Positions 1,493-35,600 of a DNA stretch of 64,000 nucleotides are shown here, one piece after another (the stretch's first letter is position 1; every line of letters starts with the position of its first letter). The position numbers and the translations under genes were made by a program. The notes under the pieces are model-generated. The model was not told the DNA's origin. It made no database searches and saw only the letters and a program-made list of their open reading frames with translations. This stretch comes from Zygnema circumcarinatum SAG 698-1b (taxonomy: Eukaryota > Plantae > Zygnematophyceae). Location of the stretch: assembly GCA_037447605.1 (NCBI GenBank), contig JBBHKD010000010.1, positions 1-64,000 on the forward strand. Reading direction: 5' to 3'.

Positions 1493-2505
1493 TGTTGTTG
1501 CAGCGCCCTCCCTTGGTGGGGCTGCCACTTCTCCTCTACCTTGGGTAGAACTCGACATCTTCAATGAATTGCTCAATCACACAAAGCACACTAAATGCAA
1601 GAGAACAACTCAGCGGAAATATGAAAATGTAAGGAGAAAGCCGACCTAAAACTCCTTAAGATAAAGATGAAATACAACGGCAACACTAGAGCCCAAAAGC
1701 TTCAAGCACCTCTCTTCTCCAAGCTCATTGAATAAACCACCCACTACAATTTGAACTCTTCCCACTATCTCCTTGGCCCTAAGCAAGATAGCCTCATCCC
1801 CAATGTGTAGTCACGAGAAGGTTAACTTCTACCCGAACAATCTAACCCTTAAATACAATATGGCCATTAGTGACATTGTCCGTCACGGCCGCACATGCTA
1901 CGCCTTGCAAGGGCCTTATCGATCCTAATCTCGCCCGTCGGATCCTCCTCGGCTTGCACGGATCGACACATCAATCGCAAGTCGGATCCACTTCTCGGCC
2001 TTATCTCCCGTCCAGGTCCTCCACCGTAGGATCGACTCCTCATTACTTGGCGTCATGTAGGGACCCCGTAAGCCTGGCGCCAACCACCGCCACAAACGTA
2101 CAGGCCTTCAATTTAACCCGACGTGGCTTCGATTAGCCCTTTGTCCTCCAAATAGTCGTGGCGACCGTACCTGCGTCGGTTACGCTCCAGCGATTAGCGC
2201 CTTGTCGCCTTCTCGATTTGTCGGCGTCGCGCCACGTCACATCTGACTCCGCCACGCCGCGCCGCTCACCGACCAATGTCAGGTGTTACACCCATGGTCT
2301 TGGCGCTTCCCAGTCATTACCGATTTACCCGCACCGACGATTACGATGCCTTGCCTTGCCGTCGGACTCTGGCGCTACGCGCACCCCTTAAGACTTGTAC
2401 GGTCGCTGGGCGCCCTCCGTACAATGTCGACAACATGAACACCCCTCCTTAGAGACTTAGTACCAACAGCAGTGTACAACAAGTCCTTAACTGCTTTACA
2501 CTATG
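1493..2505 (-). repeat. Family A LTR (3'-most)
   Basis: About 1.0-kb direct repeat of 4388-5427, bordered by the PPT. Confidence 0.85.
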
Positions 2506-2509
2506 ATCC

Positions 2510-4458
2510 CCTCTTGGTACCAGTTCTCCATAGATCTAGTTCCATGAGACACTCATTTACTCTAGTGTCCGCAGCCAAATGAATAACCCTTGTCCTAACA
2601 AGCTGCCCCCTCTTGATCCAAAGGCCTAGGAGAGAATCTTCCCCCTCTTGATCTCCTCTTGGTTGCCTTTCACATTGATCTGAGGCGCTTCCACTGAACT
2701 CCTCTTAGGTCCGGCAACGGGTATTCCTTTTGTAGTTTGCAACCTTGTACTCGGGGGCGCTCCTTGCCACACAGGTTGAAAGGACCCCTCCACTTCAACT
2801 CCATCCTTGTTTTAGTTCACAACAAGCCCGATTGTTTCGGCCTCCACGGAGCTCACTAACTCACAGTGATCACGGAATTCACTTTTATTCTCACCACCAC
2901 TAATGTCACCCTTTAGGTGATACCAGGTCTTTTGACCCCCTTAGCCTGGCTATCTGAAATGTCATTGGCGAAATAATCCCCTGCTCCCCTGAGCCTCAAT
3001 GCTTGCTCTAGCATCCCCTTTCCTCCTCCAAGCTGGTCTGAATCTATCTTATGGTGATGGGTTTCCTCCACGGGGGTCCTTGGTAGGGATAGCTCAGCCC
3101 TTGAGCCTCCTTCCCACTCTAGAAAGTAAAGCCACCTGTGGTCCCTTGCACAAGACTTGCCACATCTCCTTGTGAATGACACAACTACCCTTCTCAAACC
3201 ATACTCCATAGTCCTTCTCACACAGCTGACTAACAGAGAGGAAATTAATCTGTAGTCCGGGAGTATGCAGTACGTTACCAACATGGACAACCCTCTGCGT
3301 GCTTCCCTCCCCGAGCACCTCCAACTTGACTGTTCCGCCTTGCGTCACCGAGACTCCATCTCGAGTTCTTGCGAGTAGACCCGGCGGGTTCCCTCGAAAG
3401 TCTCCTTCTGCCCGAGAGTGAGTAGATCCGCACATGTGCTGGAAGCACCGGTCAATCACCCAAGGTTTTGGTGAATTCCTTTCAGCTCTAAGGCGTCAAA
3501 CAAACTCATCATTAGGTCCCCAATCACGAGAACATCAAGTTGCGTCTCCGTGAATCCTCTTAGCGTTCATCTCTTGGATACACTGCCATCACCCTCCTCC
3601 TTCTTGCTCGTTTGGGCATGCATTCGGATGAACCACCATTAGAATGTTGGGGCGGTTCTCTTTGAAGTGACCCGGTCTTCCCACAAGAGTAGCAAGTCCT
3701 CACGAGTCTTGACTCTCCACCATCTTTGGCTGCGTTTTGGTCCCTTCTTGGATTCTGTATGAAGCGGCGATTCGCGACCTCGTTTCTCCGAACTTGACTG
3801 TCTTTGCTTGTCAGGGCTTGTCCCTCCTCTACCACTCTCCTCTTGACTGCTCAAAGGTCATCTTAGTCGTGGGCGAGTTCGTAGGCGATTAGCGGTCAAA
3901 TCTATCAGAGCAAGCCTCGAGAATAGACTAATCTTGTGATCCAGGCGACGCCCGTCCGTAAAACTTTGCATCAGATTATCAAACTTGATCACATAGTCTT
4001 TCAGCTCCTCTCTGAATCCAGCGAGTTTTTCCTAGCTCGCGTGTGTAGAGATAAACAACGGTGGCATTATCACCATAAACTAATCTTCTCTAGAGTATCC
4101 CAAATCTCCCGAGCTGTCTTTAACTCTGAAATCAGGTCTGTAGGTTCCTCACTAACGCCAGCACAAAGCACGGTCCTAACCTTGCAATACTTAACCCTCC
4201 ACTTCTCAAACTCAAGTGGTTTAATCTCTGTATCTGGGGCCACAATGGAACCATTCACATACCCCAACAGCCGCTTGTTCTCTCCAACACCGTGAGCATG
4301 TGAAACTTCCATCGCTTGTAGTTCTTCCCATCGAAAGTTGGAATGGTAAACTTCCATCTTCCTGTAGCCGACTCTGATACTACCACTTGTTGTTGCGGCG
4401 CCCTCCCTTGAGTGGGGCTGCCACTTCTCACCTCTCTACAGCAGGTGAGACTCGACAT
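2510..4458 (-). pseudogene. Family A gag-protease ORF, frameshifted, no integrase or RT
   Basis: KFTIPTFDGKNYKRWK, LLGYVNGSI, zinc knuckle CYSCGKTG, protease region, VLHTPGLQINFLSVSQL. No gap and no IN/RT/RH motifs before the PPT. Confidence 0.75.
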
Positions 4459-5427
4459 CTTCAATGAATTGCTCAATCACACAAAGCACACTAAATGCAA
4501 GAGAACCTTTCAGTGAATATGAAAATGTAAGGAGAAAGCCACCAGCCTAAAACTCCTTAAGATAAAGATGAAATACAACTTGACAACACTAGAGCCAAGC
4601 TTCAAGCACCTCTTCTCAAGCTACGTGAATAAACCACCCACTACAAGCTGAACTCTTCCCACTATCTCCTTGGCCCTAAGCAAGATAGCCTCACTCCCCA
4701 ATGTGAGTAACGAGAAGGTTAAATTCTACCAAACAATCTAACCCTTAAATACAATATGGCGCCATTAGTGACATTGTCGTCACGGCCGCACATGCTACTT
4801 TGCAAGACCCCTCTTTATCCCGATCCTAATCTGCGCTGCCGGATCCCCTCTCGCCTTGCACGGATCCAAAGACATCAATGCCGCTGACCTCAGCTCCTTT
4901 ATCTCCATCCGAGTCCTCCACCGTAGGGTCGACTCCCTCATTACTTGGCGTCATGTGGGACCCCGTAAGCCTCTGGCGCCCACCGACCTAGGCCGTACAG
5001 GCCTTGATTCTTTCCCGACTGGTAGCGCCTTCGATTCGCCCGCGTCCTCCCGAAATAGTCATTCGCTGACCGTTACCTGGTGATTACGCTCAGCGGTCGG
5101 CGCCTTGTCACTTCTCGATTTGTCGCGTCGCGCCACGTCACATCTGACTCCGCCACGCGGCGCCCGTATCCGCGGAACTTGATGTCAGGTACACCCATGG
5201 TCTTGGCCTTCCCGAGTCGTACCAGCGATTTGCCGCACCGACATTACGATGCCTTGCCTTGCCAAATCAGACTCTGCGCAGCCCTTCTGGCGCACCCATA
5301 AAGGAACTTGTACGCGGTCGCCCTGGGCGCCTCCGTGCAATGTCGACAACATGAGCTTACCACCCCTCCTTAGAGACTTAGTACCAACAACAGTGTACAA
5401 CAAGTCCTTAACTACTTTACACTAACA
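4388..5427 (-). repeat. Family A LTR (shared middle LTR)
   Basis: On the minus strand it is preceded by a PPT (5428-5437) and followed by the PBS (4385), so it serves both units. Confidence 0.85.
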
Positions 5428-5443
5428 ATCCCCCTCTTGGTAC

Positions 5444-6375
5444 TTAGTTCCCCTTGGGCCCTAGTTTCATGAGACCACTACAATTCCCTAGTGTCCCACA
5501 ACTACATGTATGCTCCCTTGTCTTCACAAGCTGCCCCCTCTTGATCCAAAGGCCCGAGAGATCATCATCCCCCTCTTGATCCTCACTTGGTCGCCTTCCA
5601 CACTCGATCCTGGGCGCTTCCGCTGAACTCCTCATAGGTCCAGCAACCGGGTATTCCTTTGTAGTTGCAACCTTGTACTCGGGCTGCTCCACTACCCTGG
5701 GTTGAAAGGACCCCTCCACTTCAACTCCATCCTTGTTTGGATGCAACAAGCCCGTGTTTCNNNNNNNNNNCTCTGAGTGATCCTGGAATTCGCACACATT
5801 CTCACCACCACTAATGTCCACCCTTTCGGTGATGGGTCTTTTGACCCCCTTAGCCTGGCTATCTGAAATGTCATTGGCGAAATAATCCCCTGCTCCCCTG
5901 AGCCTCAATGCTTGCTCTAGCATCCCCTTTCCTCCTCCAAGCTGGTCTGAATCTATCTTATGGTGAATGGGTTCCTCCACAGGGTCCTTGGCGGGATAGC
6001 TTAGCCCTTGAGCCTCCTTCCACTCTAGAAAGTAAAGCCCACCTTGCTGGATTCCCTTGCACAAGACTTGCCCTGTCTCCTTGTGAATGACCTCACAACT
6101 ACCCTTCTCAAACCATACTCCATAGTCCTTCTCACACAGCTGACTAACAGAGAGGAAATTAATCTGTAGTCCGGGAGTATGCAGTACGTTATCAACATTG
6201 ACAACCCTCTGCGTGCTTCCCTCCCGAGCACCTCCAACTGGATTGTTCCGCTTTGCGTCACCGAAACCCCTTGTCCTGTTGCCGTGTAGACCGAGCGGGT
6301 TCCCTCCAAAGTCTGCTTCTCTGCAAAGAGTGAGTCGTCCACGCACATGTGCCTTGAAGCACCGGAATCAATCAC
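5444..6375 (-). pseudogene. Second family A unit: protease plus C-terminal extension
   Basis: IDSGASRHM, NFLSVSQL, GGLYFL. The ORF runs to ...GLMKLGPKGN* just before the PPT. Confidence 0.75.
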
Positions 6376-6436
6376 CCAAGGTTTCGTTGAATCCTCANNN
6401 NNNNNNNGTCCTTAACTACTTTACACTAACACATTG

Positions 6437-6770: not shown

Positions 6771-7099
6771 TTTTTTTTACAGAGCGGTCGACCATTTGTC
6801 TCTTTGTAAAGTAAACACCGCGCTCGACAACCTTGATAAAGTCACGAGCTTCGAAGCGCTGACCTTCCCTCACCTCCTCCCACTACGACTAAGTCTTGGC
6901 CTGGCTAGCGGGCAAAGCCCAACATTCAATTATATTTACAAATAAACAATGGTAAAATTCCTTGTGACTCTATCAAGGTCTGCCCCTACAGGGACTTCAC
7001 ATTTAGCGACGATAAAAACCCTCACACTTTCTTTAAGCCTTCCCTAAAACACAATATGAATATTCCACCTCCAAAAGGGCTTATCGACCAACGCCGGAG

Positions 7100-10000
7100 T
7101 GGACTCCGCCTTCAAAGTGGCCTTGACCCGCCGCCCTCTGCATATAATCAATCACACTTTCCACGTTTTTCGTCACGCCTCGTTCGTCCAAAAAGCACAC
7201 TCCCACGTTAAACTGAGCGTCCTTGATCTTCTGTCCCCACTGTTAGTCTCCGCAACATATTTGCAGCCTAAGCATGGGATTGGTCGGCCGCTTTTATGAG
7301 CATTCTCACCGCTCGTACCATGTCCTTTTGAATGATTCCGTTCTCGTCCGCGAAAATCACGCCCAACAGAAACTGTGCATCGTCATCTCCTTGATCCGCC
7401 GCCTTTTGAAACAACTCTACAGCGCGATTCATGTCCTTGTAACAAAACTACCGGTCATGTACAGCATCCCTAACCAGCCCAGGGCATAAGAATCACCATT
7501 CTGCTTGGCGCATGAAGATCGCTGAACGCGCGGTTCCATGTCCTTTTGAAAATTGCACCTCCTTGTCTGGCGCGCTTTTGAAGCGGCTCTGGCCGATTCA
7601 TGTCCCATACTATAACACCACATTACGGTCATATACGGCATCAGCCCCAGATTGATATGAGCTAAAGTTGGCCATTCTCTGCAGTAGCGCCTATAAAACT
7701 GAACCGCTTGTTCCATGTCTTTGGGGACTCCTTGTCCATTCGCATAGCACACGCTTCTGTACTGGGCATCATGGGTTATTCTTCGCAGCGCTTATAAACC
7801 AACGGCCTGCTCCATGTCTTTGTGTGACCTCCATTCCTCGTAGCACCAACCCAATTGTTTTGGGCCCTCGATCTGCCATTCCCTCGGCAGCCGCTGCCTA
7901 TAAAACTGAACGCGGGCTCGCTCCATGCGTTCTTGGGGACTCCTTGTCCATCTTCGCATAGCACACTCTAAATTGTACCGGGCACCACTTTTATGGCTTA
8001 CCCTTCGCACGCCTATAAAACTGAAATCCGCCTCGCTCCATGTCTTTAAATCTTTCATTCCAGCACACACCACACAGGCCGGCCACCTGATGGCCATTCT
8101 CTCGCCGCAGCGCCTATAAAACCGAACGGGCCTCGCTCCATGTCTTCTCGCACTTCCTTCTCCATTACTTTAGCACCAACCCAAATTGATTTGGCCGGAG
8201 GGGATTGCTATTCTTTCTGCGCTGCGCCCGCAAAACTGAACGCTCGTTCCATGTCTTTGGGGACTCCTTCTCCATTCGCGTAGCACCAACCTAAATTGTA
8301 CTGGGCCTCAGGATGGCCATTCTCTGCAGCGCGCCTATAAAACTGAACGGCCTGTTCCATGTCTTTGGGGACTCCTTCTCCATTCGCGTAGCACACGCCT
8401 AAATTGTACTGGGCCTGAGGATGGCCATTCTCTGCAGCGCGCCTATAAAACTGAACGGCCTGTTCCATGTCTTTGGGGACTCCTTCTCCATTCTCGTAGC
8501 ACCAACCTAAATTGTACTGGGCCGGAGGATGGCCATTCTCTGCAGCGCGCCTATAAAACTGAACGGCCTGTTCCATGTCTTTGGGGACTCTTCCATCAGA
8601 AGCACCAACCTGGCCTGTGTTGGGCCTCAGACTGCCATATTCCTCGCAAGTAGCCGCAGGTAAAACTCCAACGCTCGTGTCGTCTTTTTGGGGACTCTTC
8701 TCCATTCTCCGCTGCAGCACACTTAAATCGTACTGGGCCAGTGATGGCCATTTCCTTCGGCAGCCGCCTATATAAAACCTAACGGGCTCGCTCCATGTCT
8801 TTTTGGGGACTCTCTTTCTCCATTCTCTAGCACACCTTAAATTGTACCGGGGCTCGAGGATGCCATTCTTCAAGTAGCCGCTTATAAAACCGGAACGGGC
8901 TCGTGTTCTTTGCTGCTCCGGGACTTTTCTCCATTCTCGTGAAGCATCAAACCCGCAGAACCGGTGGGCCCTGCAGATCTCATATATATTCTTCCTCGCA
9001 AGTAGCCGCTTATAAAACCGAACGGCCCTGCCTACGTCTTTGGGGACTCCTTCTCCATTCTCGTAGCACACGCCTAAATTGTACTGGGCATCACGATGGC
9101 CATTCTCTGCAGCGCGCCTATAAAACTGAACGGCTTGTTCCATGTCTTTGGGGACTCCTTGTCCATTCGCATAGCACACGCCTAAATTGTACCGGCATCA
9201 CGCATCGCCATTTCCCTCGCAAATATAAACCGAACGGGTTGCTCCACGTCTTGGTGACTCAAATCCAAACTCGTAGGCTCTGACCTAAACAAGATCGGCA
9301 TCACGACAAAGCATACTTCGCTAGCCGCCTATAAAACTCAACGCTTGTTCCATGCCTTGGTGACTCCAAATCCAAACTCGGTGAGCCTCGACCTAAACAA
9401 GATCAAGTACACGACGCCATTCAAGAGCGCCGCCTATAAAACTGAACGGCCTGTTCCATGTCTTTGGGGACTCCTTCTCCATTCGCGTAGCACCGCCTAA
9501 ATTGTACTGGGCATCACGATGGCCATTCTCTGCAGCGCGCCTATAAAACTGAACGGCCTGTTCCATGTCTTTGGGGACTCCTTCTCCATTCGCGTAGCAC
9601 ACGCCTAAATTGTACTGGGCATCACGATGGCCATTCTCTGCAGCGCGCCTATAAAACTGAACGGCCTGTTCCATGTCTTTGGGGACTCCTTCTCCATTCG
9701 CGTAGCACCAACCTAAATTGCATTGGGCCGCAGGACGGCCATTCTCTGCAGCGCGCCTACAAAACTGAACGGCCTGTTCCATGCGTCTTCGTGACCTTCT
9801 CCATCCGCCGCAGCGCACACCCCAAATCGGTAGTGGGCATCAATGCCATTCTGTACGCCTATATAAAAACTCCAACGCCTCGCTCCATGCGTCTTCTTTT
9901 GGGGACTTTCACTCTCGCATAATAACACGCAATTGTACTGGCATCAATGCATGGCTGGCCTTCAGCCGCTATAAACCGAACACCCGGCGTGTTCCATGTC

Positions 10001-10406
10001 TGGGGGACTCTTTAGCGTAGCACACACCTAAACTGAACTGGGCATCACGATGGCCATTCTCTGCAGCGCGGCTATAAAACTGAACGGCCTGTTCCATGTC
10101 TTTGGGGACTCCATCACCATTCGCATAGCACCGACCTAAATTTAACTGGGCCTGAGGACTGCCATTCTCTGCAGCGCGCCTATAAAACTGAACGGCCTGT
10201 TCCATGTCTTTGGGAACTCCATCACCATTCTCGTAGCACAGACCTAAATTGCACTGGGCCGTAGGATGGCCATTCTTTGCAGCGCGCCTATAAAACTGAA
10301 CGGCTTTTTCCATGTCTTTGGGGACTCCATTTCCGTTAGCGTATTGCAAAGCTAAACGGAACTGCGCCTCAGCCTTATCCTTGATCTCTTGTTTAAGGGT
10401 TTCGAC
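7100..10406 (-). CDS. Exon 2 of 4HB-Sel1 gene A: about 29-30 tandem Sel1 repeats (108 bp, 36 aa); frameshifts in this assembly
   Basis: Acceptor TTGACTCGTCAG|GTC (VETLKQEIK) at 10406. Repeated GHxxAQxNLGxCYxNGxGVPKDMEQAVQFYRRAAEN. The CCATGTC anchor recurs about every 108 bp from 7318 to 10308. Confidence 0.85.
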
Positions 10407-10756
10407 CTGACGAGTCAAGGCAAGGAGGGGAATCACAAGTCAGCATTGTCGGAAATGCATACCTAAATGGATACAGGCAAAAACTCAGGGTCCAGGGACT
10501 CGGCTTCTGATATGTTCTTAACGCATTCTAAGACAATTTTCCTAACTGGGGGACGGTTCAAATCCACATTCGTTCAATCCACATTCGTTCAAATCCATTC
10601 TCTCCTCAATCTGTTGACGAAGCAGCCTTTGTCCTGGTAGGCAAGTCAATCACAGACAGTGATAGGTGAATCTGCAGATGCATAAACATTTAAAGCCATC
10701 CCAGAAACTTACAGCATGCCATCACAGCGCTTCTGCAAGTCCGCTCCGAAACGCAC

Positions 10757-11182
10757 CTGAGCATTTGGATCGGATTGGGTCCCTAGTAGATTGGTTTTCT
10801 GACTCGGAGAAGGTGGTTGACCGCCTCTCTCCGCTTCTCTCACCACCAGAAATGTCAGCCGGAAGGAGAGCAACTCAGCCTGAATTTGTGTAATTTCTGC
10901 TGAAATGCTGTTAGCAGACATGAGTCGGTACGCAGTGCTCTGGTTGCATTTATTTGCAACAACGATTGCCCTCTTCATGATAGACTGAAACTGGCGTATT
11001 GCAAGTTTTTCTAAATCACTCCCTTGGTAACTTCTACTCTTCATCGCTTCGTACACGATATTCATGGTCTCGCTCAGCTCCTTGCCATTCTTTCTATGTG
11101 ACCTCACGTTCTCCCACACAGCCATCACTTCCTTCACAAGAGACCCGACTTCATTCACAGCAGACAGGGACATAAAATCCAT
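10757..11182 (-). CDS. Exon 1 of 4HB-Sel1 gene A: 142-aa helical domain resembling MCAfunc/MLKL-NTD/RPW8
   Basis: Strong Kozak context GCCGCCATGG. 426 nt open. Donor CAG|GTGCGT in phase 0 matches the exon 2 acceptor. Motifs VRSHRKNGKEL and MKRAIVVANKCNQSTAYRLMSA resemble MCAfunc (judged by eye). Confidence 0.75.
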
Positions 11183-12561: not shown

Positions 12562-12809
12562 GGCTTCTTGCTTCTTGCTGCTTGCTGCTTGCTTTTCGCT
12601 TCTGGCTTCTGGCTTCTGGCTTCTGGCTTCTGGCTTCTGGCTTTTTGCTTTTTACTTCTTGCTTCTTGCTGCTTGCTGCTTGCTGCTTGCTTTTCGCTTC
12701 TGGCTTCTGGCTTCTGGCTTCTGGCTTCTGGCTTCTGGCTTTTTGCTTTTTACTTCTTGCTTCTTGCTGCTTGCTGCTTGCTGCTTGCTGCTTGCTGCTT
12801 GCTTCTTGC
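12562..12809. repeat. 7-bp minisatellite (GGCTTCT/GCTTGCT)n with about 90-bp higher-order duplication
   Basis: Directly visible. It generates the spurious LASGFW-repeat ORFs. Confidence 0.9.
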
Positions 12810-16200: not shown

Positions 16201-17413
16201 GCCCGCGGCCGCTGGCTCGTTTTTGGCAATTTCTTGCGGCTGCCAGGAGAGGGCCCCGTCCGGCGCATACGACAAATATCGGCGCCCTCTCCGGCGCGAG
16301 CCATTTGGCTTCGTCCTGTGATTGGCTGCCGTGCGATTTGGGGCTTGTCGTGAGGCGGTTGTCGGCGTACCTCAAACGCGGGAGGGGACTGACCACGTGG
16401 CGATCGATGGATGGCTCACTGGAACCCGTGAGAATTCGACTCACACGTGTGACTGCCGTGCGGGACTGCGAAACTGTCGTCCAGAATAACGGAGCGAGTC
16501 ACATGGAGCGGCAAGCAGGCGAGAGCCTTCACCGACGGGCGGGGCTCTGCAGGTTCGCTAAAACGAGGACTCGAGAGGGCTGTCAACTGGACGAACAAGA
16601 ACTCGCAAACGACCACCAACAGTAAGAGAGAAGCAGCCATGGAGGAAGCTAAAGATGCGACAACCATGGACGGATCTCAACGAGAGAGGCACATGTGATG
16701 AGGACCAAGTCCTTTCTGTCGAACAGAATTAGGTTAAACCGACACTTTAGGGTTAAGGGCTTTTAAGGAGAGGCTGCATCTGCTTGGGCCACTCCGCCGA
16801 CGCCGAAGGATATGGATTAGGGTTAGGGTTGAGGAGGACATGGCGCTCTCAGAAACGGGACAGGACTCAGACAGCACTCGTGAAATAAATTGAATGCTTC
16901 ATTGAAAGTGAAATAGAAAGTGAAACTGAAACTAAAACTGCAATTAAAACTGAAACTGAAACAGGAATAGAAGTGAAACTGAATCTGACTGACAATTTTG
17001 AGCCAGGACAGAAATAGATAGAAAGCGAACACATTTGGGGGCAGAGCTTGGGCGTTCACGCCCTTTATTTTTTCTGATAGCAGCCACAAAGTAGGAGAAA
17101 GGTGGAGATGGGGGAAGAGAGAGAGCGAGTGAGAGACAGGGAGAAGAGTGAGGGTGAGGGAGACGAGGTGCGGGAAAAGTAGAGAGAGAGAGTGAGAGGA
17201 GGAGAGGGAGAAGGAGAGGGTGAGGAAGAGGAGAAGGATGAGGGTGAGGGGGTAAGGCAGAGAGAGGGCAGAGGGAATGGGTGAGGCAGAGAGAGATAGA
17301 GCGAGAGAGAGAGAAATAGAGAGAGACAGGAAGACAGAGGTAAGCGGGGGAGAAGGAAGGGTGGGCCTCTGTAGGTTGACTGAAATGGAGTTGACCTAAA
17401 ATCTAAATCCCTT

Positions 17414-18447: not shown

Positions 18448-18533
<86 letters not shown>

Positions 18534-20358: not shown

Positions 20359-21149
20359 CACTCAAAAATTTAATAATCTCCCTCGAGGAAGCTAAAGATG
20401 GGCGGACTTCAACGAGGGAGGCACATGTGATGAGGACCGCGTCCTTTCAGTCGAACAACAGAATTAGGTTAAACCGACACTTTAGGGTTAAGGGCTTCTA
20501 AGGAGAGGGCTGCATGTGCTTGGGCCCCTCCGGAGACGCTGAAGGATATGGATTAGGGTTAGGGTTCAGGAGGACATGGCGCTCTCAGAAACGGGAGAGG
20601 ACTCAGACAACACTCATGAAATAAATTGAATGCTTCATTGAAAGTGAAATAGAAAGTGAAACTGAAACTAAAACTGCAATTAAAACTGAAACTGAAACAG
20701 GAATAGAAGTGAAACTGAATCTGACTGACAATTTTGAGCCAGGACAGAAATAGATAGAAAGCGAACACATTTGGGGGCAGAGCTTGGGCGTTCACGCCCT
20801 TTATTTTTTCTGATAGCAGCCACAAAGTAGGAGAAAGGTGGAGATGGGGGAAGAGAGAGAGCGAGTGAGAGACAGGGAGAAGAGTGAGGGTGAGGGAGAC
20901 GAGGTGCGGGAAAAGTAGAGAGAGAGAGTGAGAGGAGGAGAGGGAGAAGGAGAGGGTGAGGAAGAGGAGAAGGATGAGGGTGAGGGGGTAAGGCAGAGAG
21001 AGGGCAGAGGGAATGGGTGAGGCAGAGAGAGATAGAGCGAGAGAGAGAGAAATAGAGAGAGACAGGAAGACAGAGGTAAGCGGGGGAGAAGGAAGGGTGG
21101 GCCTCTGTAGGTTGACTGAAATGGAGTTGACCTAAAATCTAAATCCCTT

Positions 21150-22181: not shown

Positions 22182-22223
<42 letters not shown>

Positions 22224-25156: not shown

Positions 25157-27037
25157 TATTATAAATAAAGGGGGCGACTATTTACAGTGTACGGATTCTG
25201 AATGTAGTGTACGATTCGCCGGGCAGCAAAAAATCCTTTTTTTGGTTGCCCAACGCTGTTTCATACTTTTTAGAATAGATACAGACCTTTTTTTAGGTAG
25301 GATGTCGCGGATAGTGATTTGAAATGTACCTAGCGTCTACAAGGTATAAGGCATAACCGCGTGGAGCAACATGATTGGTCGCGGCAACATATGGCGTGGC
25401 AAGTATGTTTGGGACCGTGACTGACAAACGAGCACGACAAAAGTGGAGGCCGCGGGCGCGTCGAAATGGCGATAAAAACTGACAGATTTTTCTCAAAAAT
25501 AGCTCCATCTGTGCCCTGTCTTTCTCTGTCAGTTTTAATTCCGGCCATCGGATTCCATGCGCGGCTCCATTGTCGTCTCATTTGTCACAGCGCTGCTGCC
25601 AGTAGTCGGTCTTATGGCCCCTATGCTGTAGCACGCGCACCTGAGTCAGTCTCGTACATCCGCAAACTCTGTATCTATTCTGAGAAAGTCGCGTGGGCAA
25701 GGGTTTTTCTGCCAAGCGATCATATACATTGGGCACTCCTGATGGTCACCTGTGACAGTAAAATTCCTTGTGACTTTATCAAGGTATGCCCCTACAGGGA
25801 CTTCACATTCAGCGACGATAAAAACCCTCACTCTTTCTTTAAGCCTGCCCTAAAACACAATCTGAATACACCACCTCCAAAAGGGCTTATCGATCAACGC
25901 CGGAGTGGACTCCGCCTTCAAGTGGCCTTGACCCGCCGCCACTCCATCACTCTTTCCACGTGTTTTGTCACGCCTCGTTCGTCCAAAAAGCACACTCCCT
26001 CGTTAAACTGAGCGTCCTTGATCCCCTGTCACCACTGTTAGTCTCCGAAACATATTTGCAGCCTCAGCATGGGATTGGTTGGCCGCTTTTGCTTTAACAC
26101 CATGCAAATTCCTGCATCCTATACAATTGAACGGCCTTTTCTATGTCTTTGGGGACTCCTTCTCCCTTCCTGTAGCAGTCACCTAACTTGTCATGCGCGT
26201 GATAACTGCCATTCTCTACAGCGCGCCTATTAAACTGAACGGCCTGTTCTGTTGGTGCAAGGGGCAGCAAGAAAGGAAAGACTCAAGGAAGGGCAAACAC
26301 ATGCCTGGGTATCAGAGCTCAAAACTTTTCTTCTACTTCTCCTTGGGCCACATACCGCTTCCGCCACGATATGCCTTCTCGTCCACCTCTTGCCAGGTGC
26401 GCACAGCGGAAAGCTAAACACACCACCTACAAGAACTTTTCTTCAACTCCTACATGGTCTCGGCTCCTCAACTCCACGCTCCTCCAATGATCTCCTCGTG
26501 TGGAGCAACACACCGCCCATACAATGGTCGCCTCCACTCATCCACCACGTCAATCCAACACGAGGACTCACATGACAAATGATACAGTAGTAAGGAGAAA
26601 GCCCACGGCCCCAAAACTCCTTAAACTTCATGAGTGTAGTACATGTTAGTGTACATAGTTAGTTCAGATTAGCATGTTTGTGTTGGCGCTTAGTTCCTAG
26701 GGGTGTGCTTCTAGGTGTGACATGTATGGGGACGGACTTACTTCAGCGTGCGCGCGGCGGCGAGACCGACCGCGCAACCGTACGGATAGTATGGACCGTA
26801 CGGACCGTACGGTCGGTACGGACAGTACGACCGGGAGTCCGACATTTGGTACCGCGCCGAGGAATCGGTCCTGGCGTACGGAATCGTGGACTGATGCGGC
26901 AGCAAAAGGCGGCGAAGTTGGTGGAGTCGGCGGAGCCTATTTTGCGTACGGAAGATAGTCCTTGTGGGTGACGGCGGGAAGTTCAGCTCGGCAGTAGAGT
27001 ACATGGCCATCTGGGTTAGAGCGGTGGTGTTGGTACG

Positions 27038-27421
27038 TGTTAGTGTTAGTGTATGATAGTTAGACATTGTATGGCACACACTAACTTGTTGTGGTACTCA
27101 GTTTGTAGAACCTGAGATCTGCTAGGCGTAGTGCTCTTAGATCTAGTAATGTCGGTGCTCTGACTTTGGTGAGTGCGCCGCGAGTGCGCGGAGTACGAAC
27201 GAGCGGCGCTGATTGGTCGCGGCNNNNNNNNNNTCCTAACACTCTCTCATTGTGATTTCCGCTGTGCTTGTCTTGTAGCTTCATTCTGTTGTTATGGGCG
27301 ATGAGTGAAGTAAGATAGAGCTTTGAGTGTTTGAATGTCTTCATCCGTGGGAACTCAAGTTCCAATGGAGGGCGACACCCGAGGTGGCGCCGGAAGTGGG
27401 GAGCAGACCCCTGCTTCAACA
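27038..27421 (+). mobile_element. Family E LTR (solo or gap-collapsed) inside the B 5' LTR, TSD GTACG
   Basis: GTACG at 27033-27037 and 27422-27426. The 3' part matches 60860-61047. Confidence 0.8.
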
Positions 27422-27841
27422 GTACGTTGCCAGGCTGGGTGTACTATGCATAGCAAGACACGAAGTAGTTTATTTAGGTTGTTTGAATAAGGTTGTTGCA
27501 TGCATGGTCCCGGCGCGTGTGACGTGACATGGTCACGTCACAGCCCCATACTATATAGTGAGAGTGGGTGTGTAAGTTAGCAACCTTCTTGATATGCATT
27601 GCAAGGCTATGGCAGTTTGAAGGCATGGCTTTGGCAACAGGAGGTGGACCTTTGTGAGGAGTCTCCGTGTGTGGAGAGCTGCCTCACGTGAAGGTGAAGT
27701 GATCATGTGGTGAAAGCTTGACTAGGCTTATGGGGGCTTGAGTTGGAAAGCTTGTCATCATAAAGGAGTTTTAGGCTGGGAGCTTTCTCCTACGTTTTTC
27801 TATTCCGCCTCTCGTGTGTTGTGTATGCACGTGAGTGAAAA

Positions 27842-28221
27842 ATGAGTGAGAGTGCTGCGGGCACCAGGAGGGAAGTTTCCATGGACAGTGAAGAGGGAGA
27901 AAGGGTGGAAGGTGAATTTGCTTCTCATCCCTCTGCCCCTCTCACAAGTGGTATCAGAGCTCATGGTGAAGAGGAAACCGGGGCTAGTGTGAAGTTTAAT
28001 GTCCCTGCATTTGATGGGACAGACTACAAGGGATGGAAGTGGCGGCTGACTCCCATACTTGAAGGGAAGGGACTTCTTGGTCATGTGACTGGGAAGGTGA
28101 AGGCGCCGCCGGCTACATCCGTGGAGGAGCTTGCAAAGTGGAAGGCCCGTGACAACAAGGCCATCACTCAGATTGCAATGAGTGTGAAGGGGACGCCTTC
28201 ACACATGCTCTACGACCTCAG
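27842..28221 (+). CDS. Copia B gag N-terminus (cut by a gap)
   Basis: KFNVPAFDGTDYKGWKWRL...GKGLLGHV...WKARDNKA. Confidence 0.85.
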
Positions 28222-28231
28222 NNNNNNNNNN

Positions 28232-30709
28232 CTTAAGCCGAGGAGGGGACCTTGGCTGCTGGTGTGGGGCGCACCGTGACTATGTGGTGCCCCTACGTGT
28301 GAACCAGTTCTCACGCTTCGAACCTAGGACCTCCGTCGTCCTATAGGGTATCCGATACCCTAACCATTAGGTAATGCATTGGATGGAAACATAAAGCCAC
28401 GCCGGGCCCTAAGTAACCCTTCCCCCTTGGGGTGACTATAGCGTATCGCTACATTACTCCCCCCCTGTGAGAATGGGAACGCCCTCGTTCACGTGTGTGG
28501 GGTAGTAAAGGCAACTCGTAGTTTCAACGGCACGCGTCGAACTCTACGTGATAACCGGGAGGGCTCAGCGATAATCCCGGTCAAGTCCCTTTCCGAGTTG
28601 CGCGGGGACGGCTCGGGAACCCCCCGTGCCGCCCTTGCCCGCTCTCCTGCGGCCTGCGCCTCCCAGTACAAGTTTATGAGCTCCTGGCAATTGGTTAAGT
28701 TGCCCTCGGCTTCCCATGTGCTATGTTCAACCCCATAGCCCAACCATTTCACGAGAAATTCGTGACGGGAAGATCGACCCTTTCTCACAAGACGGTGGGC
28801 TTGAATGGTTTCAACCTCATACTCAAGTTCACCTTCAAGTTCCACTGGTGGGGGAGGTGGTTGGATCCTCCCATCGCTACGGTAGGCCTTTAGCAAACCC
28901 ACATGAAAGACCGGATGCACCTTCATGTGGTGGTAAATCAACGATGGCGACCTCATTATTCGCTTCCGCGGCGGTAAAGGAGTCGATGAAACGGGGCCCG
29001 CGACTACGTGTTCCGCGTGGCTTTGGAGTCTCAAGTTAGCGTACTTAGCAACACCTCGCCATGCCGTTGAAGGTGAGTTGGAGATGCGATGGCGGTCGGC
29101 ATAGGCCTTTTATGCTTGGCCCAGGAAGCATGGCGGTACGCCGTGCCCTGCAAAGCACCCTAGAGACGTGTAGGACAAAAGATCATTTACTTGAGGTTGA
29201 GTCCCATCGATCCCTCGGCTTCAAGGATGGGGGTTCTGTGAGCGCCCATGTTCCACCAGATCGAGGCTTCAGTCATACTTGATTTCTGAGGATTTAGAAG
29301 GAATCCCCGGCCCAAAGTTAAAGGGGAAAAGAAAGAGGTAGTACCAATAGACTCCCCAGTAAAGATTATTGATGGCATACTCCGCCCATTGGGGTGATTC
29401 GTCCCACCCATCCGAGTGGGTCCCACATAATGCGGAGTATCCTCGAGATCCTATTCACCCGTTCCGTCGGCCATCGGTTTCTTGGTGGAAAATTTGTACT
29501 CAACGCACACTTGGCGGTCCCCAGCGATTTTGAGCACTTAGTCAAAATGGTAGGTGAATCGTGGATCACGGTCAGACACAATTTCTGACTGAAGACCATG
29601 CTGGCTCCACACTTTGTCAACATACAACCGTGCAATCTCGTCGGCCCCAGCGGTCTTAGTAGTTGGTGCAAAGTGCACCATCTTCTTTGGCCGTCGACAA
29701 AGGCGGGGATGAGTCATGCCCACAGAGGTATCCGCGGGGAAGATCGTGATCAGAAGTCCATACCCTGCTTGTCCCATTCCGAAAAGGAGGTGTGAGGGTT
29801 GCTGGCTGGCGTGAGGATCCTGCAGTCTACAGGGGTTTTATTTCAGTGAAACCAGTTAGGACCAGCAGAGTACATAAAACTTTCACATCCCTCGAGAGTC
29901 CAGGCCACCAGAACTCTCGGAGCAGTGCCTCACGGGTTTTGGCAACTCCCATGTGACCTCGGTACGGAGGATCATGTAGCTCACCCAGAATGAGCTGCCG
30001 TACAGTCCCGGCCTTGGGCACGACCAACTGCTGGCCGTGGTACCAGAATCCGTCCTTAGACACCACTTTGTCCTTATAGCCATTACCTTGGCCATCCAGG
30101 AACAAAGGATCACCAGCATACCCCTCCTGGATCATCTGTCTGAGTTCAGAGAGAGCAGGAGGGTTGACTGCGTCACTGGTGGAGGGATCTATGACNNNNN
30201 NNNNNTGCACCATGAACAAGGTGCATCCCTCCTTAACTGCTTTGGCCAATTGCATAGCTGAGCACAGATAAGGAGTATCAGGTTGCTTGATAGCAAAGGA
30301 TGTGGAGGTGCCAGGGTGCAGGGTAAGCCGCCTGTCACCACTGTGCAGAATGCAATGTGGGACAGAAAAGTCCAATTGTGCCTTGACCATGGTTAACCAA
30401 GCACTCCCTAAAATAACATCAGTTCCAGGGGCCAGATGAGTCAGAAGACACTTGACTGCCCCGGAGTAGGATTGGAGCTTGATCTTGAGTGTGACGATGC
30501 CAGAGATCTGGCCCTTTCTTCCATCCCCGAAAGTAACACTTTCTGAATGGGGATCTGTGGTCAACCCAAATCTATGGGTGAATGCAGAACTAACAAAGTT
30601 AGCATCTGCCCCAGTATCTAGCAGTATAACTGCTAGGTGGCCATTGGCTGACCCGATGAAGGTCATGGCACGATGGGCAAGGTGGAACATAGATCGCACT
30701 ATATGCGAA
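28232..30709 (-). mobile_element. Chromovirus Gypsy family G1 fragments: protease, integrase, chromodomain, PPT, 3' LTR start
   Basis: LDTGADANF. Integrase zinc-finger region HDPPYRGHMG. HPVFHVGLLK. YEVETIQAHR...FLVKWLGYGVEHSTWE. PPT GGGGGGAGTAA then TGTAGCGATACGC at 28453. Confidence 0.88.
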
Positions 30710-30719
30710 NNNNNNNNNN

Positions 30720-32656
30720 GGTGGAGGCATCAGCTACGAAGTCTCAGGAGGAGACCTCCAGTTCACGAGAGGAGACAGCCAGCATGCCGCATAAGTTGGT
30801 GGCTTCAGAACCACGTGCAGCGGCAAATGAAGAGTTGCTGGAGGAGATGGCTGTTGAGCCAAAGGAGGATGCACCAGCTCCAATGCGAGTTGTAGAGCAG
30901 CCTCAAGAGCATCCCTCCGTGATGGAGAAGACAAGTGGGAGGACCAGGCGGCCTCCAAATCGTTTCAGTCCGGCTGTGCCTACAAAGCGCATGCGGAAGA
31001 AAGCACGAAAGAATGCCCAGGATCATTCTGCATCATTCTCAGGTGACATGGACATGATTGCCCATTGTTACATGGCCCATGCTGTTGAGCCTCAGACTTA
31101 CGGGGAAGCTGTTGAGGGGCCAGATCAGATCAAGTGGCAGGAGGCCATTGATAGTGAGTGGAACAGTCTGATTGAGAATCAGACTTGGCGCTTGGAGAAG
31201 CTCCCACCTGGGAGGCGTGCCATCGGCAACAAATGGGTCTTCAAGGTTAAGAGGAAGGCGGACGGCAGCATCGATAGGTACAAGGCGCGACTTGTGGCCA
31301 AGGGCTACAGTCAGAAGGAGGGGATTGACTACACAGAGACCTTTGCTCCTGTGGTGAAGTTCAACTCCCTCCTTTCCCTCATTTCTATTGCAGCCGCAGA
31401 GGGGATGCATGTCCACCTGTTGGACATCAAGACTGCTTTCTTGTATGGAGATCTTGATGAAGAGATATACATGGAGCAGCCGGAGGGGAAGTGCGAGAAG
31501 GGAAAGGAGAACCTTGTGTGCAGACTCGTGAAGAGTTTGTATGGGCTGAAGCAGGCCCCTCGCGTGTGGTATGAGAAGATCGATGAACTCTTACAGGGCT
31601 ATGGGTTTGATCGTTTTGAGACTGATACTTGTGTGTACTCAGTTGGCGAAGATGATGATAAGTTGTTTGTTGGGGTCTATGTGGATGACCTGATCATGAT
31701 CAGCAAGTCTCTTCGCAGCATTGCAGAGTTGAAGGAGCTCTTGCAGGAGAATTTCCAGATGACTGACCTTGGAGAGGCCCAATATCTCTTGGGGATCCAG
31801 CTGAAGAGGGGGCCAGATGGTTCACTATTCCTTTGTCAAAGGAAGTATGCAGAAGATGTGTTGCGGAAGTTCAACATGTGGGAGTGCAGGCCATGCACAA
31901 GTCCCATGGAGGCTGGAGTTCGCTTCACGAAGGAGATGTCCCCGTCTACAGAGGAGGAGGCAAAGGCAATGGCTGGAGTGCCATATCGATCTGCGATTGG
32001 GAGCCTCATGTATTTGATGACAGGCACGAGGCCTGACCTTGCGAAAGTCGTGAGCACGGCAAGCAGATTCATGGAGAACCCCGGCGAGGAGCATTGGGAA
32101 GGAGTCAAGCGTATATTTCGGTTTCTGAAGGGAACTGTGGATTATGGCCTCAGGTTTGAGAGGGGGACTCGCAGCCGAGTCTATGGCTATACAAACGCTG
32201 ACTGGGGAGGGGATTTGGATTCATCCCGCTCCACATCTGGATACGTTTTCTTGAATGCAGGTGGGGCCATCACGTGGAACTCCACCTTGCGGTCTTGATA
32301 GCCCTCTCGTGGCGGAAAGCGAGAGTATATAGCTGACTTGCCATGCTGGCCGGAAAGTGTGTGTAGGCTGGCGGAACTTCTTTAAGGGAGTAGTGGCGGC
32401 CTGCAAACCCTTACCACTTTCTTCACCGGACAATCAGTCCTCTATTGCTCTAATGGGGAATCCGGTGTTCCACAAGCGGAGCAAGCATTTCCGGATCCAA
32501 TACCATTACGTGAGACAGGAGGTGAGAGAGGGACTTGTCAGTATCAAGTTCATTGGAACCAGGGAGCAGGCAGCCGATATGCTGACGAAGGCAGTCAGTG
32601 GTGAGACCTTGAGGATTAATTCGGATCTCATTGGGCTGGGGCCTCTCAGGAACTAA
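30720..32656 (+). CDS. Copia B reverse transcriptase and RNase H (late frameshifts)
   Basis: [75 protein letters not shown]. Confidence 0.92.
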
Positions 32657-35600
32657 AGTGCCAAAGAGGGGAATGTTAGTGTACATAGTTAGTTCAGATT
32701 AGCATGTTTGTGTTGGGCTAGTTCCTAAAGGGTGTGCTTCTAGGTGCGACATGTATGGGGAGGGGACTCCATTTCAAATATGAGATGGGCGCGAGAGAGA
32801 CTGACTCGCGCAACCGTACGGATAGTATGGACTGTAATGGACCGTACGGTCGGTACGGACAGTACGACCGGGAGTCCGACATTTGGTACGCGCTTGCCGA
32901 GGTCGGTCTGGAGTACGGAATCAAGGAATGATGCGGGCGGCGGGCGACGGGCGCTGGAGTCGGGTGGAGGCGTAAGTGAGCTTACTTTTGGTGTGAGTAA
33001 AGATAGTCTGGTGGGTGTTACATGGAAGTTCAAATTTCTGCTGTAGAGTATATGTGGCCATCTGGGGTTGGGGAGCGGTGGTGTTGGTAATGCTGTTGCT
33101 GGGGTGTACTATGTATAAGAAGACACGGCAGTTTATTTAGGTTGTTTGAATAAGGTTGTTGCATGCATGGTCCCGGCGCGTGTGACGTGACATGGTCACG
33201 TCACAGCCCCATACTATATAGTGAGTGTGGGTGTGTAAGTTAGCAACCTTCTTGATATGCATTGCAAGGCTATGGCAGTTTGAAGGCATGGCTTTGGCAA
33301 CAGGAGGTGGACCTTTGTGAGGAGTCTCCGTGTGTGGAGAGCTGCCTCACGTGAAGGTGAAGTGATCATGTGGTGAAAGCTTGACTAGGCTTATGGGGGC
33401 TTGAGTTGGAAAGCTTGTCATCATAAAGGAGTTTTAGGCTGGGAGCTTTCTCCTACGTTTTTTCTATTCCGCCTCTCGTGTGTTGTGTATGCACGTGAGT
33501 GAAAAATGAGTGAGAGTGCTACGGGCACCAGGAGGGAAGTTTCCATGGACAGTGAAGAGGGAGAAAGGGTGGAAGGTGAATTTGCTTCTCATCCCTCTGC
33601 CCCTCTCACAGTACAAGCTCCTTTAGGAAATCTACATAATCCCTTATGCTAGATTCTCCTCCTCTCATGAGCACTATCCTATCCTCTCATAGATAGCCTA
33701 CGCCCCAACTGCTGTAGCCAAGCACTACTTGCCTCCATGAACTCCTCCTCTACCTCAACACATGAGGGACACACCATCTAGCTCCTTCACTAAAGCTTAG
33801 CATGATGAGAGCTAGTTCCTTCACGACCTTCATACACAAGGCCGGACTCCTCTAGGCCTCAGCCTCTGCCTACTCTTCCTATACAACAACGGTCGAGCAG
33901 CATAACACTCAGAGAGAGTGAGTGAGTGAGGGAGCCAAGCTTGCTCCCTCTTAAACTATGGCGGCCGGCGTGACGTGACCACCGATGTCACGTCACAGGC
34001 GCACTAGCAAGCGCATGCACTCAACAGNNNNNNNNNNCCTAAGCCGTAATTCTACGACCCTAGACCTTCCCTAGACCTGCCGTACCATGCCCTATCGATA
34101 CGGGCACCCCCCATGTTCGGTCCTACACCAAACATGACCGTTCATACATGACATTGTCCCTATACCACCACATTGATGTCCCGGACAACATCCATACTAG
34201 GAACTAAGTACCAACACCTTGATGTACCCTATACATCAACATGTTCCATGTCTTTGGGGACTCCATCGCCGTTGTAATAGCACTTACCTAAATAACACTG
34301 GGCATCACGATTGCCATTCTCTGCAGCGCGCCTATAAAACTGAACGGCCTGTTCCATGTCTTTGGGGACTCCATTTCCGTTAGCGTATTGCACAGCTACA
34401 CGGAACTGCGCCTCAGCCTCATCCTTGATCTTTTGTTTAAGGGTTTCAACCTGACAAGTCAAGGCGAGGAGGGGAATCACAAGTCAGCATTGTCGAAAAT
34501 GCATAAGGAAATGGATGCACGCAAAAACTCAGGCTCTAGGGACTCGGGGTCTGATATGTCCTTTACGCATTCGAAGACAATTTCCTAACTGGGGGACGGT
34601 TCAAATCTCTCCTCAATCTGTTGACGAAGCAGCCTTTATCCCGGCAGGCACATCAATCACAGACAACGACAGGTGAATCTGCACATGCATAAACTCCCAA
34701 ACCCATCCCGGAAACTAACAGAATGCCATCACAGCGCTTCGATTGCAAAATTCGGCACGGAAACCGCGGCTCCCCCTCAACCTGTCTGTCCCGTCCGTAC
34801 TTCGAAATAGGTTACAAAATGAGATGGGCTGCTCAAGCCGCCCGAGCCTCTAACGCTCACTTTTGGCGGTAAGAAGGCCCGCCAAGTATAACGCCGGAAT
34901 CTGCCCCGACGCTCGTATGCACTAGTCGACCTCACCATGGCCAAACCAAATTCGTAAGCCCGTCGGGCCTATTCCGCCGTGTACGGCAGGCCTTTTTCGC
35001 AAAAAGTGGCTGCTCCCCCGCAGGTTTGGGCTCCTCGACATCAAGAAAATAATTATTTTACCTTCGTATCTTCGAGCCAGGTCTGACCCCCCCCTTTTCG
35101 CCCCGCCGCGCTCCCTCCGCCGCCCGCCGCTGTAACAAACCCGACCTCAGCAGGGTTTGAACACAAGACCTCCCGGTACCCACACCAGTGCTTTACCATT
35201 AAAAGGCAACCGCGGATGTAAGTACTAGGCCATACAACACATGTATAGCGTTTCGCTACATTCCTCCCCACCTAAACCGGGCTCGTCCTCGAGCGCACTC
35301 AAGGGTTTTCACGAGCAGCGTTCAAGCTCCTTCAACACATGGACTACGGCCCTAGCCCCTCAGGCCACTAGGGGGACCGGACCCGTAGCATGTGTTAGTG
35401 TATAGTAGTTAGTCACTAGACAAGTTGTTGTTGGGACATTAGTTTTGTGTGCGTGTGTTGTGTGTGTGGCCCTTGGCGGCGATGTGCGCCTAGACCGACG
35501 GGCGGCGGTACGGACTTTGGTCGGCGAGAGGCGTTGGCGTTGGAGTCACAATTGACGAGGCGCGATGCTGGTTATTCGAAAAAATGTGACGTGGCGCGGA

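Follow-up and report, generated by a model that had tools for sequence, protein, structure and literature searches.

A Sel1-repeat array in Zygnema circumcarinatum with a nearly invariant half-unit and seven variable sites mostly on the putative groove-lining helix

The closest described systems are the highly internally conserved (HIC) repeat domains (TPR, ANK and WD40) of fungal NOD-like receptors such as HET-E, HET-D and HNWD (Dyrka et al. 2014, PMC4986451; PMC12222747). The rapidly diversifying recognition domains of these receptors are marked by repeats that are almost the same apart from a few hypervariable residues in the groove. Highly conserved repeat arrays assemble badly, with repeats lost or invented in short-read assemblies (PMC12222747). 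Viridiplantae have few HIC repeats (0.4% in the Dyrka 2014 survey, PMC4986451), and that survey does not mention Sel1 (0 occurrences). The array described here is of the Sel1 type, and its host is a streptophyte alga. Like the fungal HIC repeats, it consists of tandem solenoid units that are near-identical in DNA and vary at few positions. The variable positions of fungal HIC TPRs lie on concave-side helices, and their arrays are hard to assemble, as is this one; repeat number varies between gene copies in the fungi, as it does between the two paralogs (A and B) found here. Fungal NLRs carry a central NOD between the effector domain and the repeats, whereas here there is no NACHT or NB-ARC and the repeats begin 13 aa into exon 2. 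The fungal class is further defined by codons under positive diversifying selection and by repeat numbers that are polymorphic between alleles or strains. Homogenisation of the present array extends over just one half of the unit.

In solved Sel1-repeat proteins the concave inner surface is made by helix 1 (PMC10868440), and the structure of SEL1L likewise has helix 1 on the concave surface (PMC4746701). For EsiB and LceB the proposed binding site is a conserved KAAEQG-type motif of helix 2, the concave face being without conservation (PMC10868440). The invariant RAAENG of the present array corresponds to this helix-2 motif. EsiB (4BWR), LpnE (6DEH), HcpC (1OUV) and SEL1L share the 36-aa Sel1 consensus with the array (E 4.6e-80 to 3.3e-52), and all have helix 1 inside and helix 2 outside, as predicted here. 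To our knowledge, the units of known Sel1-repeat proteins are diverged, with no homogenisation at the DNA level, and none of these proteins has been reported as a fusion with an RPW8/MLKL-like bundle.

The window (the whole 64-kb stretch of DNA that was analysed) is part of a scaffold with numerous gaps (22 runs of 10 N). The gene under study would join a small four-helix N-terminal domain straight to a long Sel1-repeat solenoid, and is laid out as follows.

10757..11182, minus strand: putative exon 1, a 142-aa all-helical N-terminal domain of four helices; the open reading frame ends at a CAG/GTGCGT donor
10407..10756, minus strand: putative intron, GT...polypyrimidine tract...CAG, with splicing predicted from the sequence
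10368..10406, minus strand: start of exon 2, a 13-aa linker helix VETLKQEIKDKAE ahead of Sel1 unit u1
7663..10367, minus strand: Sel1 array u1-u25, ~25 tandem units of 108 bp each (Pfam PF08238)
7081..7662, minus strand: ~5 diverged, non-homogenised C-terminal Sel1 units with several frame breaks

The two exons were searched and folded one by one. Exon 1 matches no Pfam family at E <= 0.01, including PF22215, PF05659 and PF19584, and a HMMER search of 1.84 billion representatives found no relative; its single match, P0121, was rejected as an unrelated coiled-coil repeat protein. Language-model (atlas) features place it at 0.96 to the MCAfunc/MLKL_N/RPW8 clusters. A single-sequence AF2 model has four helices (pLDDT 71.5, pTM 0.66), and the top Foldseek matches of that model are to the CC-R domain of NRG1.1 (E 0.05-0.08, TM 0.66-0.69), with MLKL lower. 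The closest look-alikes in both structure and language-model features (NRG1.1 CC-R, 7L7W, and MLKL, 6D74) are from Streptophyta. However, RPW8/CC-R and MLKL bundles gave no Pfam or HMMER match to exon 1, and the Foldseek match reaches no better than E 0.05, for a model built from a single sequence. The domain may thus be called RPW8/MLKL-like by resemblance only.

The tandem Sel1 array reported in the first-pass annotation is borne out by a TRF period of 108 bp across 8089-10328 and by PF08238 matches that score 141.9 bits over 3 stretches and 218.2 bits over 6, where the gathering cut-off is 30.7. When aligned to the unit consensus with wrap-around, the minus strand gives ~25 units from 10367 to 7663, followed by ~5 diverged C-terminal units, the last of which has its TAA stop at 7081-7083. 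The best PDB match is EsiB 4BWR (4.6e-80), with 6OK3 (9.8e-75), LpnE 6DEH (1.7e-69) and SEL1L (5.6e-58) also matched. A single-sequence AF2 model of three units has low confidence (pLDDT 52.8) and served for helix boundaries; DSSP on it predicts helices from position 35 to 9-10 and from 19 to 31 of each unit, the alternation of helix A, loop and helix B expected of Sel1.

About 46% of the array is clean, in four blocks of at most ~390 nt each, three of them under 360 nt.

10016..10367, minus strand: clean block 1, with u1 (cap-like), u2, u3 and the first 28 nt of u4, indel-free against the consensus
9430..9785, minus strand: clean block 2, with u7 and u8, preceded by the 3' half of u6 and followed by most of u9, which lacks 1 nt
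9036..9196, minus strand: clean block 3, with u12, which lacks 1 nt at its start, followed by the 5' half of u13
8247..8588, minus strand: clean block 4, with the 3' part of u17, u18, u19 and the 5' 60 nt of u20

Units were compared using the full u2, 3, 7, 8, 12, 18 and 19 and the clean parts of u9, 13, 17 and 20, that is, ~7 full and 4 partial units that are mutually non-independent. Identity among the full clean units averages 91.9% in nucleotides and 86.8% in amino acids (range 77-94%); the HIC threshold is at least 85% identity over at least 100 aa, and the readable stretches here are only ~118-121 aa. The A-B loop and helix B are encoded by the 60 nt of codons 14-33, where the DNA of clean units hardly varies; the exact 57-nt string for VPKDMEQAVQFYRRAAENG is present in five copies in the array and in one copy in paralog B. 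The helix-A cassette (codons 34-36 and 1-13, 48 nt) is different. Homogenisation in DNA, earlier attributed to the array, thus holds for codons 14-33 (pS 0.04) but not for the helix-A half (pS 0.29).

Paralog B lies ~24 kb from paralog A and is broken.

34230..34460, minus strand: 5' part of paralog B, with the beginning of exon 2, unit B1 and the 5' 62 nt of unit B2
26255..34229, unstranded: 8-kb insertion in unit B2, with TG...CA ends and a 5-bp target-site duplication (GAACA)
25880..26249, minus strand: 3' part of paralog B, with the remainder of B2, unit B3 and a C-terminal stretch that has its homologue at 7295-6952 of paralog A

The insertion holds a copia RVT_2 open reading frame (30673-32298), and comparison of transposon copies did not define its LTR boundaries. 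With the insertion cut out in silico, B2 becomes a perfect in-frame 108-nt unit. The intron at 10407..10756 is conserved in paralog B (36 mismatches and 4 gap events), and upstream homology starts only near the donor site, so exon 1 is not recognisable there. Paralog B has 3 units against ~25 near-identical ones in A, a difference between paralogs and not between alleles.

In indel-free units the amino-acid variation falls at unit positions 3 (Y/C/L/F), 7 (V/W/L/R), 10 (A/E), 13 (E/D/Q/N) and 34-36 (HPT/SPQ/HRD/RPA/HPP/HPQ/HPE). Every first-helix residue listed in the first-pass annotation recurs in these units, and the residues it gave for the second paralog (NRD with C-Y-K-Y, and SYH with D-K-D-R) were located in paralog B units. 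The clustering exceeds chance: the 15 extra amino-acid states are clumped over the 36 codons (p ~0.015), and 9 of the 15 fall on five codons predicted beforehand by TPR numbering (p ~4e-5). Unit 2 of paralog B differs from the consensus at 10 positions, among them all 7 variable ones (hypergeometric ~1.4e-5). Linkage between synonymous variants and the amino-acid variants beside them is complete (GGC-GTG, GGT-TGG, TAT..CAA), which indicates a few cassette haplotypes. Random read error was rejected as an explanation of the variation at the seven sites, because the changes span several nucleotides, are confined to specific codons of otherwise perfect units and are linked to synonymous markers.

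Residues 36, 3, 7, 10 and 13 follow one another at i, i+3/4 spacing along a single predicted face of helix A, and 34-35 are placed at its N-cap. The conserved packing residues A1/L5/Y9/G12 would line up on roughly the other side. This placement is indirect, being drawn from sequence and structure homology. The shared YNLG motif sets the register, such that helix-A position n of Sel1 is TPR position n+2; Sel1 positions 36, 3, 7 and 10 are then TPR 2, 5, 9 and 12, and 34-35 fall at TPR 33/34/1. The hypervariable, ligand-contacting positions of the TPR concave face are 2, 5, 9, 12, 13, 33 and 34 (PMC1261162, Magliery and Regan 2005), on the same helix and face as the variable Sel1 sites. However, that variation is between unrelated proteins, whereas here it is between units of a single array. 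The correspondence also has exceptions: Sel1 position 11 (TPR 13) is an invariant Asn in this array, and position 13 is within the Sel1-specific A-B loop. A binding role for the helix-A stripe is plausible, and the seven residues would most likely determine what is bound in the groove.

We give about an even chance to the account that combines these elements: a four-helix domain on a homogenised Sel1 solenoid, with a helix-A stripe that sets groove binding and with indels that are probably assembly noise. Unequal crossing-over or gene conversion, between units and between paralogs, would keep codons 14-33 near-identical. A few older haplotypes of the helix-A cassette (types V, W, D and Q), which differ at the seven codons, would persist. 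On helix A, which in Sel1 and TPR solenoids faces the concave groove, the seven residues would make up a single exposed stripe. A sensor or immune role for the protein is suggested by analogy. If this account is true, it would hint at an unrecognised class of sensor in an alga related to land plants, with Sel1 repeats joined to an RPW8/MLKL-like bundle, and would supply a concrete route of diversification, cassette exchange across an invariant half-unit. The locus illustrates the pattern poorly: half of it cannot be read, and it may be dead. What it adds is homogenisation limited to a half-unit, together with a synonymous diversity in the variable half that so far precludes a claim of selection. 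A bolder extension is that a streptophyte alga evolved a family of NOD-less receptors independently of NLRs by wiring an RPW8/MLKL-like bundle to a Sel1 solenoid. The specificity of the solenoid would then be diversified as a small set of helix-A cassettes is shuffled between units and paralogs, with the invariant 60-nt helix-B segment as the recombination substrate, in a plant-lineage counterpart of the fungal HIC repertoire; we regard this as improbable.

A neutral origin of the variation is somewhat unlikely. Under it the array would have been amplified recently, and the seven sites would be those of its exposed residues under the least constraint, with no recognition code. Any binding would be through the invariant RRAAENG stripe of helix B in its many copies, for example to a repetitive or multivalent partner. 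The selection test is consistent with such drift. pS is 0.29 in the conserved helix-A codons against 0.0375 in codons 14-33 (permutation p 0.005), and pN at the variable codons is 0.31, giving a local omega of 1.06 (bootstrap 0.57-3.5). This value is near 1 because pS in the helix-A half is high, and the variable sites may therefore be simply unconstrained. Relative to whole-unit pS, omega is 2.7 (range 1.4-8.5, from few units), which argues against drift. The synonymous diversity of the variable half is so far too high for claiming diversifying selection; of the first-pass interpretation, the match of the helix-A stripe to TPR 2, 5, 9 and 12 supports the proposed ligand-binding face. The match of the invariant RAAENG to the proposed EsiB/LceB binding surface (PMC10868440) also favours drift. 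However, variation is confined to one stripe, while the exposed helix-B positions E20, Q21, Q24, R27, R28 and E31 hardly vary. The changes are also chemically radical and multi-allelic, with 6 states at position 36 and 4 at position 7, and paralog B is changed at all seven sites too.

The remaining ~54% of the array is riddled with indels, at ~one small indel per 9 nt.

9786..10015, minus strand: indel-riddled block u4-u6, with 7-16 gap events and 7-10 mismatches per unit against the nearest clean unit
9197..9429, minus strand: indel-riddled block with u10 and u11, a truly diverged unit type (shared substitutions) overlaid with indels
8589..9035, minus strand: indel-riddled block from the 3' part of u13 to the 5' part of u17, with the variant GCGGCTACTTG common to u13, u14 and u16
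7663..8246, minus strand: indel-riddled block from the 3' part of u20 to u25

Within the last of these, u25 is nearly clean and is of the same subtype as u12 (Q at position 13). Mismatches and gap events in degraded units stand at 137:142, compared with 57:6 in non-coding DNA of the A and B paralogs and 53:10 in a 3.7-kb tandem duplicate (Fisher p 3e-10 and 2e-7). Indels and substitutions are thus about equally frequent (~1:1), whereas natural divergence between paralogs in the window gives an indel-to-substitution ratio about ten times lower. Two 2-kb transposon segments (1493-3476 and 4388-6392) also differ by scattered 1-2-nt indels (148 mismatches, 119 gap events). Other transposon copies are ambiguous as noise controls, having scrambled patches and not clean 1-nt indels. 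Self-BLAST of the window is suggestive only, with pairs of both low and high mismatch-to-gap ratio. The indel-riddled blocks are probably assembly noise superimposed on real units, making unit number, unit order and gene intactness unreliable at this locus. The reshuffling of repeats proposed in the first-pass annotation depends on that unit order.

It is unlikely that the gene is instead a true pseudogene in a transposon-rich region, with frameshifts that reflect real decay and clean blocks that are recent gene-conversion patches from intact paralogs. The excess of indels and the same type of noise in unrelated transposon DNA both speak against this. In addition, most degraded units have only 6-14 mismatches, as against 2-16 between clean units (u10 has 17 and u11 has 21), with 7-16 gap events each. 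However, paralog B is certainly broken, by its 8-kb insertion and missing exon 1. The in-frame TAG at 7268-7270 of the C-terminal region is a substitution and not an indel, with GAG at the matching site of paralog B, and the frame break ahead of the last unit is common to A and B; together these suggest some real lesions. Since degraded units also share some derived variants, part of the degradation is real divergence.

That the whole pattern is an artefact, in which short-read collapse or multi-paralog polishing gave the helix-B half a false uniformity and stitched helix-A variants of different genes into chimeric units, is very unlikely: the scaffold gaps, the short clean blocks and the known behaviour of short-read assemblies at conserved repeats favour it, but the seven variable codons lie inside one 48-nt stretch, so that each cassette is phased by a single read, linkage within cassettes is perfect, and paralog B, anchored by unique flanks and the transposon junction, has the same invariant half and variable sites.

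As part of the favoured account, and with the same even chance, the gene family would be alga-specific. Word-based protein searches with the clean Sel1 blocks did not find a protein of the same family within length bands of 178-565 and 67-212 aa, which exclude long relatives; the matches were bacterial and fungal Sel1 proteins of at most 66% identity.

The window is eukaryotic DNA rich in transposons, with copia and gypsy ORFs, many microsatellites and 22 runs of 10 Ns. The gene carrying the Sel1 array, paralog A, shows the following features.

Features of paralog A (minus strand)
Upstream of the array: ORF with an ATG start, ending at donor CAG/GTGCGT, 10757
10407: polypyrimidine-CAG acceptor, 13 codons upstream of the array start
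10367 down to 7663: ~25 Sel1 units (u1–u25; wrap-around alignment to the unit consensus)
8089–10328: 108-bp period (TRF)
3' of the array, ending at TAA 7081–7083: ~5 diverged Sel1 units

In the predicted gene a 350-nt intron lies between exon 1 (142 aa) and exon 2, which an inferred splice would join. The two exons were searched and folded separately, not as one joined protein. The array scores far above the cut-off for Pfam Sel1, and its nearest relatives of solved structure are EsiB, 6OK3, LpnE and SEL1L. Exon 1 has no relatives in Pfam or by HMMER. It is predicted to form four long helices, and its closest look-alikes are the streptophyte MCAfunc/MLKL_N/RPW8 clusters and, among structures, the NRG1.1 CC-R and MLKL bundles (Foldseek E only 0.05); this amounts to resemblance rather than membership. 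Although the array recalls the highly internally conserved repeats of fungal NLRs (PMC4986451), these repeats are Sel1, the host is an alga, and there is no NOD domain between exon 1 and the repeats; given this last absence, the gene is not an NLR. Mean identity among clean (indel-free) units is 91.9% for nucleotides and 86.8% for amino acids, the latter borderline against the 85% internal identity criterion for fungal NLR repeats (PMC4986451).

Units were numbered from the A of AQYNLG (position 1). Indels are absent, or limited to one 1-nt deletion, in seven units (u2, u3, u7, u8, u12, u18 and u19), and a further four have long clean parts (u9, u13, u17 and u20); u1 is divergent and cap-like. 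All residue strings quoted for the repeats in the first-pass annotation are present in the sequence, and amino-acid variation in clean units is concentrated at seven positions.

Residues at the variable positions
Position 3: Y/C/L/F
Position 7: V/W/L/R
Position 10: A/E
Position 13: E/D/Q/N
Position 34: H/S/R
Position 35: P/R
Position 36: D/Q/E/P/T/A

Codons 14–33 are almost without variation. Here the array contains five exact copies of a 57-nt string and paralog B, the second gene copy, contains one, confirming the near-invariant DNA half noted earlier. The clustering of the variable positions is non-random and the pattern is real, since the 15 extra amino-acid states across the unit codons are clumped (p ~0.015), 9 of the 15 fall on five codons predicted via TPR numbering (p ~4e-5), and paralog B provides an independent check. 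Its second unit, with an insertion removed in silico, differs from the consensus at 10 positions that include all seven variable ones (hypergeometric p ~1.4e-5). No description of such a pattern in Sel1 repeats was found in the literature.

A model of low confidence places the helices at canonical boundaries, with helix A extending from position 35 of one unit to 9–10 of the next and helix B from 19 to 31. Positions 36, 3, 7 and 10 follow an i, i+3, i+7, i+10 spacing and share a single face of helix A, approximately across from the conserved A1/L5/Y9/G12 packing stripe. Positions 34–35 cap helix A and position 13 lies just after it. Registered by the common YNLG motif, Sel1 helix-A position n equals TPR position n+2, and the variable stripe therefore corresponds to TPR positions 2, 5, 9 and 12. 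The most variable TPR positions are 2, 5, 9, 12, 13, 33 and 34, all on the concave ligand-binding face (Magliery and Regan, PMC1261162). In Sel1-repeat structures helix 1 builds the concave inner surface (PMC10868440), as it does in SEL1L. Because of this correspondence and the concave position of helix 1, homology supports a stripe that would lie on the groove face. The proposed 'recognition code' is unproven. As a caution for the groove reading, the proposed binding motif of EsiB and LceB is a conserved KAAEQG in helix 2 (PMC10868440), whose counterpart in the array is the invariant RAAENG.

The proposed DNA-level homogenisation holds for codons 14–33, where synonymous diversity in clean units is 0.0375, but not for the helix-A half, where it reaches 0.29 at conserved codons (permutation p 0.005). 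The seven variable codons have a non-synonymous diversity of 0.31, giving an omega of 1.06 against local synonymous sites (bootstrap 0.57–3.5) and 2.7 against those of the whole unit (1.4–8.5). Diversifying selection at these codons is unproven. Synonymous variants are in complete linkage with adjacent amino-acid changes: GGC goes with GTG (V), GGT with TGG (W) and, in u12 and u25, TAT with CAA (Q). This indicates that the helix-A segment represents a few older cassette haplotypes attached to a young, homogenised helix-B segment. The diversity pattern is compatible with cassette exchange with breakpoints within the invariant half, and also with long-maintained variants, but relaxed constraint at exposed sites accounts for it equally well.

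Some 54% of the array cannot be read, and the cause is probably technical. Aligned to their nearest clean units, twelve degraded (indel-riddled) units carry 137 mismatches against 142 gap events, most of the latter 1–2 nt long. Under the same scoring, gaps are much scarcer in natural divergence within the window: mismatches to gaps are 57:6 between paralogs A and B (intron and 3' flank; Fisher p 3e-10) and 53:10 in the 3.7-kb tandem duplicate (p 2e-7).

Other features of the window
16666–20765 and 20398–24435: 3.7-kb tandem duplication, 96.6% identity, GA/CT microsatellite-rich
30673–32298: copia RVT_2 ORF inside the 8-kb insertion of paralog B

When only substitutions are counted, the distance of most degraded units from clean ones is about the same as that between clean units. 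Units u10 and u11 form a distinct type, and GCGGCTACTTG is common to u13, u14 and u16; such shared derived variants indicate genuine diverged units beneath the noise. Short reads are documented to yield mis-assemblies of highly conserved repeat arrays, and long reads to introduce homopolymer indels into them (PMC12222747). The unit order of paralog A as assembled is unproven. Two 2-kb direct repeats of transposon DNA (1493–3476 and 4388–6392) begin TGTTG and are separated by 148 mismatches plus 119 gap events, the latter chiefly of 1–2 nt; they are possibly LTRs of a single element. Their scattered-indel texture is the same as in the degraded units, which suggests low-accuracy sequence patches in the assembly.

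It is also possible that paralog A is a real pseudogene. The TAG at 7268–7270 is a substitution (GAG in paralog B), a frame break ahead of the last Sel1 unit is common to both paralogs, and paralog B itself is certainly dead. The break (7150–7270 in A, 25940–26070 in B) falls between ...AADQSHA(E/stop)AANM... and the last unit (DAQFNVGVCFLDERG...), and may reflect an old lesion common to the two copies, a very short intron or, within the 3' UTR, a relic unit. An 8-kb insertion (26255–34229), whose ends are TG...CA and whose target-site duplication is the 5-bp GAACA, splits the second unit of paralog B; excising it in silico gives back a perfect unit of 108 nt. Segments 27437–27946 and 33102–33610 of the insertion are 98–100% identical, with a 10-N gap after similar sequence in both.

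Just upstream of the gene region, 35 copies of the heptamer GCTTCTT (12563–12809) are organised in a higher-order period of 98 bp (99% match), and both strands contain ORFs rich in leucine and alanine; this is probably plain satellite DNA. Many of the best-scoring database Sel1 arrays, from metagenomes and genomes, carry a fused domain of the trypsin-like protease, caspase-like (PF00656) or TIR (PF01582/PF13676) type, and among the matches listed prokaryote-type Sel1 proteins often have effector-like partners.
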